From Oculina patagonica (Eukaryota), in the NCBI RefSeq assembly GCF_052425735.1, contig NC_135761.1, forward strand, positions 59,210,001-59,274,000: 64,000 nucleotides of DNA, in the 5' to 3' direction. The notes beneath the pieces are model-generated. The model had not been told where the DNA came from. It saw only the letters and a program-made list of their open reading frames with translations, and searched no databases. Below are positions 42,969-55,024 of the stretch, piece after piece. A program made the position numbers and the translations under genes. Within the stretch, counting starts at the first letter, position 1. Every line of letters begins with the position of its first letter.

Positions 42969-45301
42969 ATAAATAATGCACGCTTGAGGTCTAGAAAAGC
43001 TGCTGGGCATTCAGTTGCTTTTCTAGACCTCAAAAGTGCAATATTTTCTTATAGAACATGGAAACCCATCTTCTAATGGGTTTAGAATATAGCGTTAAAA
43101 AGAGCACAGAACTTTAATACAAAATTGTACAAGACTCGCGGCTGCTTACGGCATTTACAAACGCACGCAACATCGGTAAAGCAATAGTTTAGTTTATTTT
43201 CTTTGGCGGCTTCTTTATAACTATAGATACCATTTCATTCATATTTCCTATTAATTTATCAGTCCTTTCTCCGTCTACCAAAATATTCTCACACAGCCGA
43301 CAAATCTAGTTGAAATATTTGCGCATTCAAGTTTGGTTAGGGACTGGTCATAAAGTACAGGTGGGGGTGGGCCAGAAAAATCGATTTTCTAGTAGACAAA
43401 ATTTTAGTGGCCCACCCTTCCTAGTTAACACAAAAAATGTAGCCCACCCTTTTAATCCTAACACAAAAATCACTGACCCCCCCCCCCCCCCCGTTTATAA
43501 TAGACAAAATACCATTAACGGGTCAAATATGTTGTACATGACCTACCAGTTCTGAGTTATGAGGCTGTAATATCTTGTCATTCTCTGAGCCACTTCCTGG
43601 AGCTGAACAGGGAAATTTAGCACAAAACCCACAGAGGGCTTTGTTTGTGTTCTGGCAGTCACCTTTTATATATTCAGAGTTAAGTAGAGCTCTCCTGGCC
43701 GACAACCTGCCGACAGGTTTTGGCTGATGTCGACCAACTGTCGGCCGACAGCCGGCCGACAGGCGGTGATGTGTCGGTAAGATGTTGGTAAGTTGTCGGG
43801 TATACGGTAACACTAAAACAGGCCAAAACAGTGCAAAAACTTCTCCACACAAGCACTCGCTGAAATCGCCCTAGAATCCTTTGCGACCCCTTCCAAGGGG
43901 GAATGAGACTAAATTAACCAATCCAATATGGCGGAGAAAAATGGAGTAGCTGTGTTCGTGTAAATTCTCCAGTCGATTTCGGCAGCGCAGAAGCTGGTTT
44001 TTCAAATTCGCCTCTAATTTCGATTTAAAAAGAACAGAAGTGGAGTGTTCTGTCTTCAGATTGTGGCTAAAAAAAGGTTTCTTACCTCAAAACGTTTCTA
44101 GAGTCCCGCTTGTACAAAACAAGAGAATAGAGGCAAAGTCGTTCAGCGAAATTCGACAAATAATTCGCATATCCGGGGTACCGGGCTTCTATAGTTTTCA
44201 GCTATGTTCTATAAAAAACAATGCCCGCTAGAATTCCATTGCTCGTATACAGCGGTTATATTCTAATTTATATTATAGATAGGAGTCTACCCGCACTCTG
44301 ATTGGCTAAAAACCTATGTTTTATCAGAGTATAAAACATAGAAAAATCATGTTTTATTGTTTTTCGTCAGCTTTCCTTGAGTGCTTCGCGCGTCGTTGAC
44401 TGTTCGTTGGCTATAACCACTCGTATCCAACAAGGGCGAATGAAATAATTGTTTTATTAAATTCCTTTTTTAAACGAAGTGAGGCGGGAAAAATTGTGGC
44501 GCAGTGTTGACTGCTTGAGTTGAATGAAACTTGCAAGGAAAGTGAGCGAGAGTTTTCTTTCGAAGATTTTCTTCGACAATCTCCTCTTAAATCGTCTATT
44601 CATACTGGATGGAACTTGATTGTGACAGCAATTAAGGTTTACGAGAAGATCCGAAGCAATAGCTTTTCTGGAAATTATACGCGTTGTTCAAGTCGAACGA
44701 AGCAAGGGACGGATGTCATCGAGACTACTATATAATGCTGAGATGAAATTGCACTCAGAAACGGTGAAGTTTATTGGCTTAGGCTTCTTTATTTGTTAAA
44801 AAAAAACTTTTAACAATTCTATCTTTGCAGTGTACTTAATGACTTGCAAGTCAATTTTGTTTCCAACCAACAGTCACCAGTTGGTTGATGCAGACTAAAC
44901 TTTATTTTCTTAAAGTTTTGTTCAGAAGTACATTTCAGATCCTGTGCATGCATAATCTTTGCTGTAATTTTTGCACGATTCTAATTTTTTAATATTTTTG
45001 TAGTCTTTACAGTACAGTTCATGACCTGCTGCAGTCAATTCTTTGTCATCATTTGAAGACAGTTACCAGTTTGTTAATGCAGCACTATTTCTTAAAGGTT
45101 AGTACAGAACTACATTTCAGATTTTGGTGAATGCTTTTGTATGATACTAAACTACTACTAGTGTGTAAAAAATTGTGATTCTGCATATTGGTCACAGAAA
45201 TTATTTGTTGCATAACTCCACTCAAAAATTGTCTTTTTCCAGTCCCAAGATGTAAATTTACCTCTTATTTATAACCTGTGACAACAATTTCTAAACTGAA
45301 G

Positions 45302-48300
45302 ATGATGGTCTCTGATGAGGAGAAGAGATGGCTTGTCGTTGGAATTGCCATGAACAAAGTAGCAGCTCCAGTATTGAGAGATTTTGTCAGACAACAAATG
45401 GACAGGCATTATGCAAATAACACCTTCTACCATGGTCTGACTGCACTATGTACCCTGAAGACACTGACTTATCCTCATGTCAATGCTGATCCCAACCTTA
45501 AAAGATTGAAATTTCAGAATATTAACAACAATCTTCACAACCATGGCAATCATAAAAACCTCTACAACTACAACATCAACAGTTCAGTAGACTTGGCCAA
45601 GTTGTTTCTGCCAGATTATCTTGCTGAGTTTTCAGCCTTTGATGAGTCACTGGACACGAGTGCTATCCTTCGCTTGTTGGGATTTAATCATCCTGCACCT
45701 ATTTTTCCATCTCCAAATCCATTAATTTCCGTTCAGACTTCAGCTGATGATGTCAGGGAAAATGTCAGGAACAAGTGGGGCCATTGTAATGTCACTGACT
45801 GGACTGAAGTCCTCTTCAATGATCGTTTTTCCAAGCTGGAGACCTTGGTGAGAAGTCTGGGACTGACTGGTGGTATGGAGAAGAATGCTTTAGATCAACT
45901 TTCTGATTGGAAAACAAAAGGTGACCGTATTTCATAAAGTCATTACAGTTCATTTTTTAAATCAGTGCTTTCCTGCGTTATGAATCATGATATTGTTGTG
46001 CTGAGTTGTGGAAACTGAAAAGAATTCATAACGTTCACATTGCTTACCTTAACATGGGTGTTTCAAGATTTCTTAGTTTTCCTTTAACATACTACTGTAA
46101 TTACACATCAGATGTACCAGACTACAATTGATTTGGCACAATGGTTCAGTTTGATTCTCTGGTTTTACTTATCCCTACCACACCCTGTTCCCATCCAACC
46201 ATACTGCACCGCTCTTCAAATTCCCTTACTTCTCCTATCCACTCTTTTCCCTACCATACTGCATCACTTACGAGCCCCACCACACCCAGTTCCCTCCATT
46301 CTGTACCACATCATATCAGGTCTACACCTTGTATCGCTCCTTATTTCCCCACAACTCCTTCCTTCCACATAATATCCGTTACATCCCATACCACAACTTA
46401 TCTGCTACATGCACCAACCTAACCACGGCACACCTCATCCCCAACTTCAAATGGAAGAGCAAGCTTTGAGTGCTCAATAGCAAACCACGTTTTTACATAA
46501 TGTGATATCATGCTGTGTTACGCTTAATTTACACCCTATTTCCTGCTAGCCCTTCCACACCTCAACTTTTACCCACCCTACCAGAATTCATCCTATACTG
46601 TAACAGCTAGACCCAATCCCCTGCCACACTTACCAGGCCTCATCCCCTGTCACTTCATCCCCTACAATCATTACCACACATTCCCTCCAACACTACTAGA
46701 ATTCATTGCCTGTGACCCTTCTCCTCACCCTACTTCGTTGAATCAACTACACATCGCAAACCTTATCATACTTTATCTCCCTCAATTTGTAACACACACT
46801 CTCTTCCTGCCTGCCACATTTATGACGCCCCAACCCCTACGACACATCCCCTACTGGCTCACCACCTTATTTCCTAGAACCCCTTCAAGACACCCCTTCT
46901 CTGGCCACCCCCACCACATCCTATTCTCAACCATGCCTTGCAAAGCCCATTCTACAGTCGATCAAACCTTATCCAACAGTCCCTGACAAAAAGTATCTTC
47001 CCTTTTGTCAAGCCATTGGTGTTTTGTTTGATTGTAGGTTGCCAGCTGTGTATGGGGCATGCTGTGGATCAAAATCTTCTTTCTCTGGTGGAACAAAATG
47101 TTAAGGAACTCATAAAGAAAATCGAGAAAAGTGAAGCAGAACAATCAGCCATTCAAGAGGAACTGGCTCAACAGGGAAAAGATCAAACTGATATGCAAAA
47201 CGCTGTTGGCTTACTGCAAGATCAACAATCGTCAACAACAGTTCAACTGGAGGAACATGATGAGCAGTTGGAAGCAGTGCTAGATTGGAAAGAACAGCAA
47301 ATGAAAGAGAATGGAAAAATTTTGGAAAAACTTGTATCAGTTGAGAAAACTCTCAGTGAAGAATTGTTGATCCGAGTTCAAGGAGTGGAAGATGATCTCA
47401 GTGGAGTAAAAGCACACATTTCGCAGACAGATGAGAGAGTGAAACAACTGGAGGAAAATTTCAGCGATGAAAGGAGTAAAGATGACAGACAAGGTAAGTT
47501 TAATTTGAATTTCCATAAATCTATCTCCTCATTGGTAGAAATGTTTACTTTAACCCTATTCATAATTAAATATTCGATGTGATAAAAATACACTATAAAA
47601 ATAAGCTTATTAAAACGTAAATCCGAAATGTATGACAAATTTGTCTTGCCTTTGTATCAACCATTACATCAACCAAGGTTGTGTACAGACTGAATGTTAG
47701 GATTCCAGGGTAATTCATTGCCTATTTTTAGAATATTTTAAATAATGTTTAAATCTAGCCAATCAAATCAATTGTACTTAAATCCCTTACAACAAGGGGA
47801 TTTTAAAACAGTTGATCTTATTTGCTAAATTTTAATTTCCTTTGCTAAACATCTTGCCAATTAAATCGTGTGTCTCCAGAGCCATTTGTTCCTAGTGTCC
47901 CAGGCTCAGCCGGCTAAGAGGGGCAAGTGGCCCTGGGGAGGAGAATGACAACAACATAGAATCCAGTCTACCTCGTGTATGTCAATTGGAACCGGAAGTG
48001 CCCAAGGTTTATGTCTACTAAGAAAAATGATTGACTAGATGGAAAGCTTTAAAGCACTTTTTTGAAACATATTTCACTTTTTAAAAGCAAGGAAGGGGTT
48101 CAGAGCGATCTTAAATTAAATAGAGTTAAACCTCTTTTAAGCAGTCACCCTCAGGAATTTTTATATAGCTCTTATTTTTTCCATACAATGCACGCTTTCA
48201 TTGGTTGATTCATGGCCACATGACAGGTAACAAAGAACCCCTTTTCCGCCGATAGTCTGTGGGTGGGCAACATTTGCAAAGCTGGACAGCATTTTTTGAT

Positions 48301-51300
48301 GTCAGGGTAACAGTGCACTGTTGCCCGCTAGCGCATGTGAGCAAAGGGTGGCAATTAATTTTGTCACCCTCGAATCTCAGTGTTTCCCTTGGCTCCACGT
48401 TGGGAAACATTAAGATTTTCGGGGGAAAAAAATAGTTGTTTTTCTCGGGACCAGTCGTTAAGTATTTTTTTGTATGGCAAGACTGTCTTTGTTGTAAACC
48501 AAATATCAACATTTTGCTAAAACGTTCAACACGAAACGAGAAAACAAATTACATTTGCCGTGACTAAGGGCTACTCATAGCTTAATTTCGTGAAACTGGA
48601 CAGCTTTACCTCTATTAAAAGAGGTCTGATTTACAGCAAGTATGGAGAACCGTTTCTGGGAGGGTGACTGCTTAACAGAGGGCCGGTTTATACAGGTTTG
48701 ACTGTCTGTATAAACGTAGTATTCATTTGTCATTTCTAAATCAGTTCACTTTTATTCTTTTTTCTCCTCAGATGCTTCTCCTGTGGATACGTTTGATATC
48801 AAAGGCTGTCAGAGGAAGCTTGCGGAGCATTATCAAAGAACAGCCAAGGTGCCCACCACTGTGTGGTCCTCAGTATTTCAGGTGGACCTTGACCAGATCT
48901 ACACTCGACTGTCCTGGGTAAAAGAAAAACAAACGCCAGCTGGGTCATCACAAACGGAACTGGGTCATTACACTGAACTTTTCACTGAGAAAACTAAGAA
49001 CGGTGCTGTGCCAAAGAGAATTCTCGTGCGAGGGGAGACTGGAATTGGAAAAACTACTTTCGTTAAAAGGCTGCTTGTGGATTGGTCGAATCTTGAAAAG
49101 GCAAAGATGAATGAGGAACAGAAAGACGCACTGAGGAAGTTTGAGCTTGTAGTGTCTGTTAATCTCAAAGACGTACCCAAGTGCCAGACGTTAAGAGAAA
49201 TTTTAAGTCGGTCACGTCTGTTTCCAGAGGATGAAGAAAAATCAATAGATGGTCTTCTCTCTTACATCAGGAGGAACCAAGAGAAAGTTCTAGTTGTGTT
49301 TGATGGTTACGACGAGTACCGCACTGGCAGCAAAGCAGAAGAAAAGTATGGCAGCCGAAGCAACTCTCCAATCTACGAAATATTTCACGGGAATATTTGG
49401 AGAGACTGTACCGTCTTGGTGACCACCCGATCTTCCAGAGCAGATGAGATGCAAGGCCCTGCCAACATGCAAGCTGAGATCACCGGGTTTACTATGTCTG
49501 ATAGAGAGGATTTTATGAGAAAGATGATTGGGAGCCAAACTCAGATGGATGATCTATTGTCATTTCTATGGAAGACCAACATGAAAGACCTAGCAAGAGT
49601 TCCGCTACTGGCTCTCTTTTTCTGCTTGCTATGGAAGGAAGAGAAGGAGAAGTTGATGGAGCTTGTTAAAAGTAAAACTAAATTGTTTCGAGCAATCACG
49701 AAGCACATTTTACAGCACAGCCACAGAAAACACTCTCCTCACGTCTCGAAGCTAAAAGAAGCGGATTATGAGGAGATCCTTGCTGAAATAGGAAAGGTTG
49801 CTTTGGCAGGTCTTCTTAAAGGCGATCTGGTGTTCGAGTTTGGTCAACTGCCTGAGAAAGTGCGTGGTGAAGAAAGTGTCATTGTTGGCCTTCTTCAATT
49901 ATCTGAGTACGGACCAAGTCTGGAACCAATGGAGATGGTATCCTTCATTCACAAGAGCATACAAGAGTACTTAGCGGCTTGGTACATAACTTATAGATGT
50001 GTCCCAGAAAGAAGTCTCGGTGGGATTGAACAGCACGCCCGCACCTTGGAGGATTGTGAGGCCTTGGAGAATGTTTTTCAGTTCATTTGTGGTTTGTCTG
50101 ACGACGGAGCAGTGAAGGTTTTGCAACACTTGAAATCAGTCAGAATCTCTGACCCAACACTGGATTTATCAAAGATAATACCAGATGTAGAAAACGAGAC
50201 AGACGTGCCACTGTTTGACGTCACTGATAGGCACCTCAGGTTCAGTGACTTGGTTTACGACTCCTTCCAAGAGGTTCCCTCCAAAGCTGAACTCTTAATT
50301 CATTGTTTTGATTGCACTGGTGGAATCGTCCTTGTTACCGGAGATAGACCACTTAATGAACTTATAGCGAAAGACAACGTCTTTACTAAACTAGCACAAA
50401 ACTGTATTTTTCTTTTTTTTGCCATTTCGTTTGGTAAGTCACTGGATTTTCTTAATTGTCTACAGATGCCACTAACATTACCAGCGAGTTCTAAAATTAT
50501 TACAGTGGGAGACTTGCTGGTAGGAAAGGTCCATGAATCTCCGTATTTAGATTATGGCTGTTGTTTTAGTGCAATCCTTTGTTGCCATAATGGTCAGTGT
50601 CAGTTTTACATAACACAATTGCTCCTGTCTTGTGAATACCATGAAAGACTATTAACGGAATCTACCGTAGATTCTGCTCCACCTGTCGCCTTGAGTTTGT
50701 CTGAAGTTCATAAGTTATTTTCTTTGTAGTAAGCTAAGCGACCAAACAGTGAAAGCTCTTGGTGCAGTCATTCGAAATTGTAAGCATTTGACTAATATTG
50801 TGGTTCAGGAGAGCGGTGACTCCATATGTGATTTTTTGAAACAAGTACCAAATCCCAGTAACTGCTCTTTGATGATCGCCTATGACGAATTTGATTTACC
50901 CCCAGGTGTTAGTGTTCACCTCACATCAGCTGCAGCAGTAGAGCTTGCCAGTTTGTTTTTGCGATTTAACAACATCATCACTCTTGAGCTTGACTTGAGT
51001 GATTGTTGTTCTGTAGCAGTGGAGACACTGGTTACAAGTATCACACACAAGACTCTTGAGAGACTGAAACTGAGTGGAATATGCCTGACTTCAAAAGCAG
51101 CTGCAGCGCTTGGTCAGTCACTTCCTGAAATGTCGTCTCTGCAAGAACTGGAGTTAACTGGGGTGAATGGAGGCATGGTGCAAGCTGAGGACATGGAAAA
51201 GCTATTTGGTGGATTCAGCAGACCACTTCCTCTGCACAGGCTTACTTTCAGTGATTTCAGCATTAGAGGCTGCCTTGCATCACTCGCCAAAATTTTTCTG

Positions 51301-54300
51301 TTCTTACCCAGTTTGAGGGTGTTGAAGCTTGAAGAGTTAGACATGGATGAACATGACCAGTGTGGTCTGCTGGAGAGCGGGTTTATTTGTAATAAACTGA
51401 CAGCACTGAGCATAGAGGGGAAAGACACAGTGAGAAGTGTTACATGCCACCTGGATGAAAACGAACTTACGCTGGATGGAGTAGGCCTGACTCTAGCAGT
51501 AGCTGTAGCGCTCAGTCGATTACTTCCTGAAATGTCGTCCTTACGAACACTCAAGTTAACTGGGGTGGATGGAAGCATTTTGCAAACTAAGGAAATGGAG
51601 ACGCTGTTTGGGGGATTTAACAAATCGCTGCCTTTGATCTACCTTACTTTCAGTGATTTCAGCGTGAGAGGTTGTCTGACTCCACTCACCAAAAGCTTCC
51701 GCTTTTTCTCCAATCTGAGAGAGTTGAATCTTGGAAGGTTTAATGGAGAGTTCAATATGGATGAACAGAACTTGTGTCTTCTGCTGGACAGCTTAAGATT
51801 CATTCCCAATCTCAAGAAATTGAGCGTAAAGGGCAAACTACTGAGTCAAGCACATTTGCTGCACAGCAAAAGTAAAAACAATAGCTAGTTTTACACACAA
51901 GACTCTCGAACAACTGCACCTGGATGGAATCAGCCTGACTCCAGCAGTTGCCGCAGCGCTTGGTGAGTTACTACCTGAAATGTCATCCTTACAAACACTC
52001 AAGTTAACTGGGGTCGATGGAAGCATTGTGGAAACTAAGGAAATGGTGGCACTGTTTGGAGGATTCAACAAACAATTGCCTTTGAGCGAGCTTACTTTCA
52101 GTGGTTTCAGCGTGAGAAGTTGTCTGGCTCCATTCACCAAAAGTTTCCGCTTTTTCCCCAATTTGAGAGAGCTAAATCTTGGACACTTGCGTATGGATGT
52201 ACATAACTTGTCTGTTCTGCTGGAGAACTTAAGAGTAACTCCTAATCTCAAGAAACTGAGCATAAAGGGCAATTCACTAAGTCAAGTGCATTGCTGCACT
52301 GTGGAAGTAAACCCAATAGCGAGTGCTACAAACAAGTCACTCGAACAACTGCACCTGGATGGAATATGCCTGACACCAGCAGTAGCCTCAGCACTCGGTC
52401 AGTTTCTTCCTGAAATGCCGTCTTTAAAAGTGCTCAAGATATCTGGATTGTATGGAAGCATTTTGGAAGCTAAGGAAATAGAGGCACTGTTTGGAGGGTT
52501 TAACAAAATACTACCTTTGAGCGAGCTTAGTTGTAGTGGTTTCAACGTGAGAGGTTGTCTGGCTCCCCTCACGAAAAGCTTCCGCTTTTTACCTAATTTG
52601 AGAGAGTTGAATCTTGGACAGTTCAATATGGATGAACAGAACTTCTGTCTTCTATTGGACAGCTTAAGATTCATTCCCAATCTCAAGGAACTGAGCGTAA
52701 ATGGCAAATCCCTGAGTCAAGCACATTGCTGCACTGCGGAAGTAAACCCAATAGAGAGTGTTACATACAAGACTCTCGAACAACTGCACCTGGTTGGAAT
52801 GAAACTGACTCCAGCAGTAGTCGTGGCACTCGGTCGGTCTCTTCCTGAAATGCCGTCATTAAGAGAACTCAGGTTATCTGGGGTGGATGGAAGCGTTTTG
52901 GAAGCTAAGGAAATGGAGGCGCTGTTTGGAGGATTTAACAAAACACTACCTTTGTGCAAGTTTACTTTCAGTGGTTTCAGCGTGAGTGGTTGTTTGGCTC
53001 CACTCACCAAAAGCTTCCGCTTTTTTCCCAATCTGAGAGAGTTGAATCTTGGAGAGTTTAATGGAGAGTTCAGTATGAATGAAAAGAACGTGTGTCATCT
53101 GCTGGACAGCTTAAGATTCATTCCCAATCTCAAGAAACTAAGCGTAAAGGGCAAATCACTGAGTGAAGCACATTGCTGCACTGCAGAAGTAAATCCGATA
53201 GCGAGTGCTACACACAAGACTCTTGAGCAACTGTACCTGGATAGAATAAGCCTGACTCCAGCAGTAGCCGCAGCACTCGGTCGGTCACTTGCTGAAATGC
53301 CGTCATTAAAAGTACTCAGGTTAACAGGGGTGGTTGGAAGCATTTTGGAAGCTAAGGAAATGGAGGCGCTGTTTGGAGGATTTAGCAAAACACTGCCTTT
53401 GAGCAAGCTTACTTTCAGCGATTTCAGCCTGAGAGGTTGTCTTGCTCCACTCACAAAAAGCTTCCGCTTTTTCCCCAATTTGAGAGAGTTTAATCTTGGA
53501 GGGTTTAATGGAGAGTTCAATATGGATGAACAGAACTTGTGTCTTCTGCTGGACAGCTTAAGATTCATTCGTAATCTCGAGACACTTAGCGTAAAGGGCA
53601 AGCTACTAAGTCAAGCACATTGCTGCACAGCAGAAGTAAACCCAATAGCGAGTGTTACACACAAGACTCTTGAGGAACTGCACCTGGATGTAATAAGCCT
53701 GTCTCCAGCAGTAGCCGCGGCACTCGGTCGGTCTCTTCCTGAAATGCCGTCATTAGAAGAACTCAGGTTAATTGGGGTGGATGGAAGCGTTTTGGAAGCT
53801 AAGGAATTGGGGGGGCTGTTTGGAGGATTTAACAAAACAGTACCGTTGCGCGAGCTTTCTTTCAGTGGTTTCAGCGTGAGTGGTTGTTTGGCTCCACTCA
53901 CCAAAAGCTTCCGCTTTTTCCCCAATCTGAGACAGTTGAATCTTGGAGGGTTCAATGGAGAGTTCAATATGGATGAACAGAACTTGTGTCTTCTGCTGGA
54001 CAGCTTAAGATTCATTCCCAATCTCGAGATACTTAGCGTAAAGGGCAAATCACTGAGTCAAGCACATTGCTGCACAGTGGAAGTAAATCCAGCAGCTAGG
54101 GTTACACACAAGACTCTCGAGGAACTCCACCTGGATGGAATAAGCCTGACCCCAACAGTAGCTGCGGCAATCGGTCGGTCACTTCCTGAAATGCCGTCAT
54201 TAAAAGTACTCAAGTTAACTGGGGTTGATGGAAGCGTTTTGAAAGCCAAGGAAATGGAGGCGCTGTTTGGAGGGCTTAGCAAGACACTGCCTTTGAGCGA

Positions 54301-55024
54301 GCTTTCTTTCAGTGGTTTCAGCGTGAGAGGTTGTCTTGCCCCATTCACGAAAATCCTTCACTTTTTTCCCAGTTTGAGAGAGTTGAATCTTCAAAAGTTA
54401 AACATGGATGAACATGACTTATGTGACCTGCTGAACGCACTTTCCTCCACAGCGGAAGTAAACACAACAGCTAGTATCACTTGCAAGGCTCTCGAGAAAC
54501 TGAATCTCATTAGAATAAGCCTGACTTCATCAGCAGCCGCGGCGCTTGGACGGTCACTTCCTGAAATGTCCTCCTTACAAAAACTTCGGTTAACTGGGGT
54601 GGATGGAAACATTTTGGAAGCTAAGGAAATGGAGGCGCTGTTTGGAGGGTTTAACAAAACACTGCCTTTGACCGAGCTTACTTTCACTGGTTTCAGCGTG
54701 AGAGGTTGCCTTGCTCCACTCACAAAAAGTCTCCAGTTCTTCCCCAATTTGACACATTTAAATCTTGGTAAGTTAAATATGGATGAACATGACTTGTGTG
54801 ATCTACAGGAGAGCTTGCAATTCATTCCCGATCTGTCGATGCTGAACCTTTCACGCAACCCACTGGATCAGGCAGTGAGATCTATCGTGCCACACGTCAG
54901 TAACTTGCTGAAGCTTCAGAGGCTTTTCATTGTTCAAACAGGTCTTTCTGAAGAAGATTTCAATTATGTTATAGAGACCGTCCGGCAAGCTCTACCTGAA
55001 CTCACAATTTATGGAGACAGCTAA
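45302..55024 (+). pseudogene. NLR immune receptor: HEPN (DZIP3-like) - coiled coil - NACHT - LRR array; two frameshifts in this sequence
   Basis: Exons 45302-45920, 47038-47493 and 48772-55024 join in phase 1. RNKWGH (Rx4H), Walker A GETGIGKTT, Walker B VVFDGYDE, VTTR, FIHKSIQEYLAA, then LxxLxLxG repeats. Frame breaks at ~50697 and ~51856. Confidence 0.88.
51050..54850 (+). repeat. Tandem LRR super-repeat, 9 modules of 375-448 bp
   Basis: The ATG of the L[P/A]EM motif lies at 51130, 51532, 51980, 52415, 52850, 53297, 53744, 54191 and 54566. Confidence 0.95.

Follow-up and report, generated by a model that had tools for sequence, protein, structure and literature searches.

Which family does the first exon of an NLR-type gene of Oculina patagonica belong to, and does the domain that it encodes look like an RNA-cutting effector? 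The gene lies in a 64-kb stretch of the genome (contig NC_135761.1, positions 59,210,001 to 59,274,000), here called the window; positions below are those of the window and its features are all on the + strand. The original prediction, made from the sequence alone, described an NLR whose N-terminal exon is a HEPN-like effector retaining the Rx4H ribonuclease (RNase) motif. Our analysis indicates that exon 1 is probably the HEPN effector of an NLR-type gene and would act as a dimer-activated endoRNase, and that the copy in the window is truncated.

Family, fold and motif of the exon 1 domain

Exon 1 gave no match to Pfam, either at an E value of 0.1 or at 10. Profile comparisons were carried out with hhalign on three alignments from the same genome, namely the window family without its DUF4559 members (A6), eleven DUF4559 exons (A5) and sixteen DZIP3-like HEPN exons (A4). 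The window family matched the DUF4559 exons at 98.2% (E 3.2e-14) over 175/192 columns, with the R..H motifs of the two families in register, and the window sequence alone matched them at 97.2%. Against the PF18738 exons of A4 the value was 0.9%, over just 35 columns around the motif. The nearest family is thus CXorf38/DUF4559, and the comparison with DZIP3-like HEPN in the original prediction has to be given up. When the spliced HEPN and coiled-coil exons were compared with DUF4559 by hhalign, the HEPN part alone aligned, so the comparison gives no support for homology between the coiled-coil exon and the tail of DUF4559.

The profile match is bridged by paralogues. Two genes at 27-28% identity to exon 1, L034 and L035, are bona fide DUF4559 (PF15112, E 4e-26) and are also above the HEPN_Swt1 threshold (28.3 bits), with the match on the motif helix. 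In intermediate paralogues, HEPN_Swt1 and DUF4559 matches fall just under threshold (for DUF4559, 17-20 bits against a cut-off of 27), the Swt1 matches lying again on the motif helix. The DUF4559 exons carry a Cys-rich insert with invariant Cys (C-x-C ... C), whereas the window family has no conserved Cys there. Judged from these profiles, the exon 1 domain is a sister or outlying subfamily of DUF4559 and not a member by the Pfam threshold. It is a divergent branch of the CXorf38/DUF4559 HEPN family that lacks the zinc ribbon and escapes Pfam.

The AlphaFold2 model of exon 1 is all helical, with a predicted local distance difference test value (pLDDT) of 87.8 and a predicted template modelling score (pTM) of 0.83. 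Long helices are modelled at residues 5-39, 140-160 and 169-185, and residues 40-139 form a variable middle region. The loop that replaces the Cys-rich insert of DUF4559 is Cys-poor and of low confidence. Among Swiss-Prot structures the best matches were human and mouse CXorf38 (template modelling (TM) score 0.66, probability 1.0, residues 4-206 aligned to 12-211); SWT1 came next. In the AFDB clusters the best matches were uncharacterised invertebrate proteins of 27-34% identity and TM about 0.8, some of them named NB-ARC, NACHT or 'DZIP3-like HEPN'; fish homologues of CXorf38 ranked after them.

HEPN domains are defined by a core of four up-down helices, the second and third of which are separated by an insert (Anantharaman et al. 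2013, PMC3710099). Helix 3 ends in their Rx4-6H motif, in which the R is followed by a polar residue, and an acidic residue is often present upstream (PMC3710099). As modelled, exon 1 has this four-helix core. Its third core helix, 140-160, terminates at H161, the last residue of the predicted motif, which lies within VRENVRNKWGHCN (residues 151-163, nt 45752-45790). R156, N157, W159 and H161 are kept in 121/121 homologues (37-91% identity to exon 1; all but one at 60% or more), and the motif is present in 19/19 paralogues, down to 27% identity, the R being moved by one residue in two DUF4559 members. Conservation of R and H across paralogues, named as a check in the original prediction, was thereby borne out. 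In these alignments the conservation of the motif is far beyond chance. D118 is invariant in the paralogue alignment A1, is kept in 120/121 homologues and aligns with the near-invariant D of DUF4559; a His-Asp dyad has been proposed for human CXorf38 in a 2026 preprint. Exon 1 is thus assigned to the CXorf38/DUF4559 branch of HEPN because the DUF4559 profile homology, the all-helical CXorf38-like model and the invariant R-N-x-W-x-H motif agree, and the HEPN-like domain with Rx4H that had been predicted is upheld.

Structure, splicing and truncation of the gene

The open reading frame of exon 1 extends over 45278-45937 and its first ATG is at 45302. The exon encodes 206 residues, in line with the single exon of about 205 residues that had been foreseen, and its last residues are DWKTK; the conserved stretch that the original prediction had placed at the exon end stands further inside, with 43 residues following it. 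The 3′ end of exon 1 reads AAA-AAA-G followed by GT at 45921-22, and one base is left over, which makes the junction phase 1. Exon 2 is flanked by an acceptor AG at 47036-37 and a donor GT at 47494-95; its product is charged and rich in heptads, and Pfam gives just weak matches of coiled-coil type. The acceptor AG of exon 3 is at 48770-71, and the exon junctions are all phase 1. In exon 3 Pfam identifies NACHT (PF05729, E 2.7e-20; its P-loop reads GETGIGKT) and NLRC4_HD2, a helical domain of NLRC4 type. No death-fold domain was found by Pfam on the exons of the gene, in agreement with the earlier description. The coordinates are collected in the table.

Features of the NLR-type gene in the window
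Feature	Position	Strand	Evidence
Exon 1, CXorf38/DUF4559-like HEPN	45302..45920	+	Frame, AlphaFold2 model, hhalign, splice joint
D118, conserved acidic residue, candidate partner of the catalytic His	45653..45655	+	Conservation, DUF4559 alignment
Predicted catalytic motif R156-N157-K-W159-G-H161 (Rx4H)	45767..45784	+	Homologue and paralogue conservation, helix end
Exon 2, coiled-coil linker of 152 codons, symmetric phase 1-1	47038..47493	+	Splice sites, joints in X4 and X8
Exon 3 read in frame, NACHT NTPase and helical domains, premature stop at 50727-50729	48772..50729	+	Pfam, spliced model
17-bp deletion relative to paralogues, frame shift +1	50698..50699	+	Alignment A2 with L043 and L039
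Leucine-rich repeat (LRR) cassettes, mostly open, out of frame with the NACHT part	50699..55024	+	Open reading frames 50749-51888 and 51980-55024; Pfam LRR families
TTT where four sister LRR cassettes have TT: putative 1-bp insertion, second frame shift, in a homopolymer	51855..51857	+	Alignment A3

Splicing was checked by aligning contigs of four public sequencing runs to 45700-51699. Two of these are DNA, X1 being the probable source run and X2 an independent coral metagenome sample; the other two are RNA-like, X4 carrying the same species label and X8 another label. In the DNA runs exons and introns are equally covered, at about 38-fold, and in X4 and X8 the exons are covered, the introns hardly or not at all. 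Both RNA-like runs show the joints 45920>47038 and 47493>48772, with GT..AG ends or with loose ends that spell the adjoining exon. The gene is transcribed and spliced as a HEPN exon, a coiled-coil exon and a NACHT exon, and the phase-1 introns of the original prediction are confirmed by the splice sites and these joints. Spliced exons 1-3 up to the first stop give 1010 residues identical to the public protein P0124, for which the Pfam annotation is NACHT alone.

The frame of this copy is broken shortly before the LRR part. The 17 bases absent at this point are present in both paralogues compared, L043 and L039. Paralogues are colinear through the site and have single open frames of 1310-1506 residues, with the LRRs in frame in L039, L041 and L043. 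The stretch 50186/50310-50771 is crossed without a gap by contigs from both DNA runs, X1 and X2, and by one from the RNA-like run X4. Since these include the independent sample X2 and the RNA-like X4, the deletion is real and transcribed. An assembly error was considered as its source and rejected, as X2 has the same sequence. An explanation by an intron at 50729 rather than a frame shift was likewise rejected; the paralogues are colinear and the RNA-like contig crosses the site unspliced. The cassettes downstream are largely open, and the damage is therefore recent. The stop lies in the last exon, and the mRNA should therefore escape nonsense-mediated decay.

As read from the frame, the product would be a HEPN-coiled-coil-NACHT protein without an LRR sensor. 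The locus is a truncated or recently decaying member of its family, and neighbouring paralogues keep the full HEPN-coiled-coil-NACHT-LRR frame. The designation as an NLR thus stands for the NACHT domain and its P-loop, but not for a complete ligand sensor, since the 17-bp deletion leaves no C-terminal LRR sensor in frame at this locus.

Exon 1 has a ratio of nonsynonymous to synonymous divergence (dN/dS) of about 0.23 over nine close paralogues and is therefore under purifying selection. Its dS against four paralogous genes (pairs L002/L039, L003/L040, L004/L041 and L006/L043) is 0.19-0.21, as compared with 0.28-0.68 for the NACHT exon and, in three of these pairs, for the coiled-coil exon; the NACHT exon by itself gives 0.36-0.68. 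At the borders of exon 1 the high DNA identity between paralogues breaks off abruptly. The exon's low synonymous divergence is compatible with concerted evolution or with additional constraint that includes silent sites.

Proposed mechanism and alternatives

In HEPN RNases such as the RNase L/Ire1 KEN domain, PrrC, Csm6 and Cas13, the active site needs two paired HEPN domains. By analogy, pairing of two exon 1 heads would create a metal-independent endoRNase active site. In a complete member of the family, ligand binding would lead to oligomerisation through the NACHT domain, the heads would be brought together and RNA would be cleaved. The coiled coil may assist the pairing of the heads or restrain it. 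The output of RNA cleavage could be antiviral or could be cell suicide. A homodimer prediction of the HEPN domain gave a score of 0.01; its controls were not run, and it speaks neither for nor against dimerisation.

Several results weigh against exon 1 being an RNase effector of this kind. Foldseek returned no PDB match at E <= 0.001. VIA-align against 48,161 PDB chains returned generic helical bundles of Z < 8, with HEPN entries within the noise (1wwp at Z 5.9, Csm6 4rgp at Z 5.7), and a profile search of PDB sequences gave chance-level matches alone. With nothing specific among solved structures, the fold is assigned from profiles and predicted structures. RNase activity has been demonstrated for no member of the CXorf38 family and is still hypothetical in the 2026 preprint. 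Moreover, selection should act against a toxic RNase head if an NLR without LRRs were auto-active, yet the truncated allele is transcribed and occurs in several samples. This suggests that the copy is inert or that the simple model of induced proximity is incomplete. The truncated allele also argues mildly against toxicity of the head on its own.

The generic character of the solved-structure matches is what would be seen if exon 1 were no HEPN domain at all but an unrelated helical bundle with an R...H pair by chance. This we regard as extremely improbable, since the DUF4559 profile match spans the whole domain, the HEPN_Swt1 matches coincide with the motif helix, CXorf38 is matched structurally at a probability of 1.0 and the motif is invariant. 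An origin from the DZIP3/hRUL138-like HEPN family (PF18738) is very improbable as well. A close structural neighbour (33% identity, TM 0.81) is automatically named 'DZIP3-like HEPN', and PF18738 is found in 11-38% of the members of neighbouring Atlas clusters. However, exon 1 has no PF18738 match at E up to 10, only 1/19 paralogues has one at E 0.1, the alignment to PF18738 exons of the own genome is confined to the surroundings of the motif, and those exons carry R-N-T-V-Y-G-H, which is Rx5H, in place of the Rx4H of exon 1.

Two further alternatives accept the HEPN assignment. The domain could be a homologue that no longer cuts RNA, its role being to sense by binding RNA or to recruit free HEPN proteins as a homotypic adaptor, as death-folds do in vertebrate NLRs. 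Among eukaryotic HEPN domains, those of Swt1 and of nematode expansions are regarded as binders without activity (PMC3710099), NLR-linked HEPN is called 'RNA-binding' in one coral genome paper, and the stand-alone relatives L034 and L035 are possible partners. We nevertheless consider a non-cutting role unlikely, as R, N, H and the upstream D (with the single exception given above) are invariant in the 121 homologues and in paralogues at 27-40% identity, and such invariance is typical of active HEPN families and is lost in inactive ones. That the copy in the window is a transcribed pseudogene is a considerable possibility, although not the favoured one; exon 1 would then be intact because the breakage is recent or because of gene conversion from intact paralogues. 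The 17-bp deletion together with the putative 1-bp insertion points in this direction, as does the low dS of exon 1 (about 0.2; the NACHT exon gives 0.36-0.68 in these pairs of genes), which homogenisation of exon 1 would be expected to produce. Against this, 1010 codons are open from the start to the NACHT helical domains, and the transcript is spliced and probably evades nonsense-mediated decay. A pseudogene here would concern this copy only and is compatible with a HEPN effector at the level of the family.

Relatives, module shuffling and known systems

Exon 1 has at least 69 matches in the own genome. Among those listed, fourteen share the chromosome-scale contig of the window and are 79-92% identical to exon 1, and three other contigs carry tandem clusters of about 40% identity. 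In public data, a full HMMER scan of 1.84 billion representatives gave 596 clusters for the exon 1 domain. These roughly 600 clusters (at 50% identity) are represented in cnidarians, and automatic cluster labels and predicted-structure neighbours point to molluscs as well. The long members carry NACHT-LRR, nSTAND3-ankyrin, NB-ARC/AAA_16-TPR or Roc-COR, and in no case is the HEPN part recognised by Pfam. Two Roc-COR GTPase proteins, P0147 and P0148, have the HEPN relative at the C-terminus, and their switch class is outside the STAND NTPases.

Within the own genome, a homologous pair of HEPN and coiled-coil exons with the same phase-1 borders heads an NPHP3_N-type NTPase with WD40 at C4:6.38 Mb. 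A DZIP3-type HEPN exon likewise ends in phase 1 before its NACHT-LRR exon. At C6:34.56 Mb (L071 328-5205) a single exon of 1626 residues joins a DUF4559 HEPN to an AAA_16/DUF7779 STAND NTPase and TPR; it is one of about ten similar genes in a tandem cluster. The observations lend support to the idea of phase-1 HEPN modules placed before different switch NTPases. Of the phase-1 modules in the original prediction, the occurrence of exons of the same phase before other switches was therefore confirmed, and that phase 1 favours swapping is a plausible inference. It is a tentative and rather doubtful generalisation that the zinc-ribbon-less CXorf38 HEPN branch as a whole is such a cassette, an RNase warhead placed on at least five classes of switch NTPase and undercounted in Pfam-based censuses, which would provide animal sensor-nucleases like bacterial Avs/bNACHT that work without adaptor cascades.

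The stand-alone DUF4559/CXorf38-like genes of the own genome are L034 944-1969 (+) at C1:34.55 Mb and L035 581-1582 (-) at C1:36.55 Mb, and encode 334-342 residues. Both have a coiled coil and a hydrophobic C-terminal tail and are possible membrane-anchored free HEPN proteins. PF18738 exons are numerous in the same genome, with at least 150 strong cases in large tandem clusters (e.g. C8:26.6-30.6 Mb and C9:12.4-13.5 Mb); among those listed none is in the window family. On C9 and C7, PF18738 exons lie within open frames of about 1500 residues.

CXorf38/DUF4559 (PF15112; Swt1/Abi2 clade) shares with exon 1 the N-terminal helix K/R-x-W-L/V-x-x-G-x-A-L, an A-K-L/V-F block, R-N-x-W-[AG]-H and the upstream Asp, and it too is fused to a STAND NTPase with TPRs in the own genome. 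It differs in its zinc-ribbon insert; exon 1 is below the Pfam thresholds and its coiled coil is on a separate exon. The zinc ribbon inserted in the HEPN domain of DUF4559/CXorf38 was noted in 2013 (PMC3710099), and the same study reported CXorf38-family HEPN fused to NACHT and DEATH in cnidarians and cephalochordates and predicted an active antiviral RNase.

NLRs with PF18738 in anthozoans and bivalves (PMC8260672, PMC9646362, PMC10236652) have the same order of an N-terminal HEPN with R..H, NACHT and then LRR, WD40 or TPR, and the same proposed role. They too are expanded in large tandem arrays, and in the own genome one such effector exon likewise ends in phase 1, but they belong to a different HEPN family and have the Rx5H motif. 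DZIP3-like HEPN has been reported to be the commonest partner of NACHT in anthozoans, with 17-83 proteins per species (PMC8260672), and to occur on NLRs in Porites and Pocillopora (PMC10236652). In the pearl oyster Rx4-6H is kept in 194/202 HEPN proteins (PMC9646362). Fusions of HEPN with NACHT in cnidarians and molluscs, together with the RNase hypothesis, were published in 2013, 2021, 2022 and 2023, and the design is not new. What the locus adds is a branch that escapes Pfam, is not of DZIP3 type and has no zinc ribbon, in a copy that is truncated, and the gain is modest.

Bacterial STAND/NLR-like defence proteins of the Avs and bNACHT types, which bear a nuclease or HEPN head at the N-terminus (PMC3710099, bioRxiv 10.1101/2022.07.19.500537) follow the same logic of a sensor repeat, a STAND switch and an enzyme activated by oligomerisation; this likeness is functional and is taken from the literature. 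The RNase L/Ire1 KEN domain is the mechanistic precedent in animals, a HEPN RNase whose active site is formed on ligand-induced dimerisation. Unlike exon 1, it has a circularly permuted HEPN fold and is joined to a kinase-like domain, and there is no sequence match between the two.

Few candidate immune receptors of corals and bivalves are as abundant as HEPN-headed NLRs, whose RNase role is predicted. If the head of exon 1 is an RNase switched by oligomerisation, these animals would link sensor to nuclease directly, as bacterial defence does, where vertebrate NLRs work through adaptor and caspase cascades. Domain censuses by Pfam miss a sizeable HEPN subfamily. The intact paralogues of this locus are suited to a first biochemical test.

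Tandem repeats were searched for in the introns and none was found. Intron 2 contains a dispersed repeat of about 183 bp at 47748-47930, with 813 first-look candidates genome-wide. Its copies align in either orientation, offset by about 95 bp, and the repeat is therefore palindromic and similar to a miniature inverted-repeat transposable element. DNA contigs pile up on it at 15-28x the single-copy depth.

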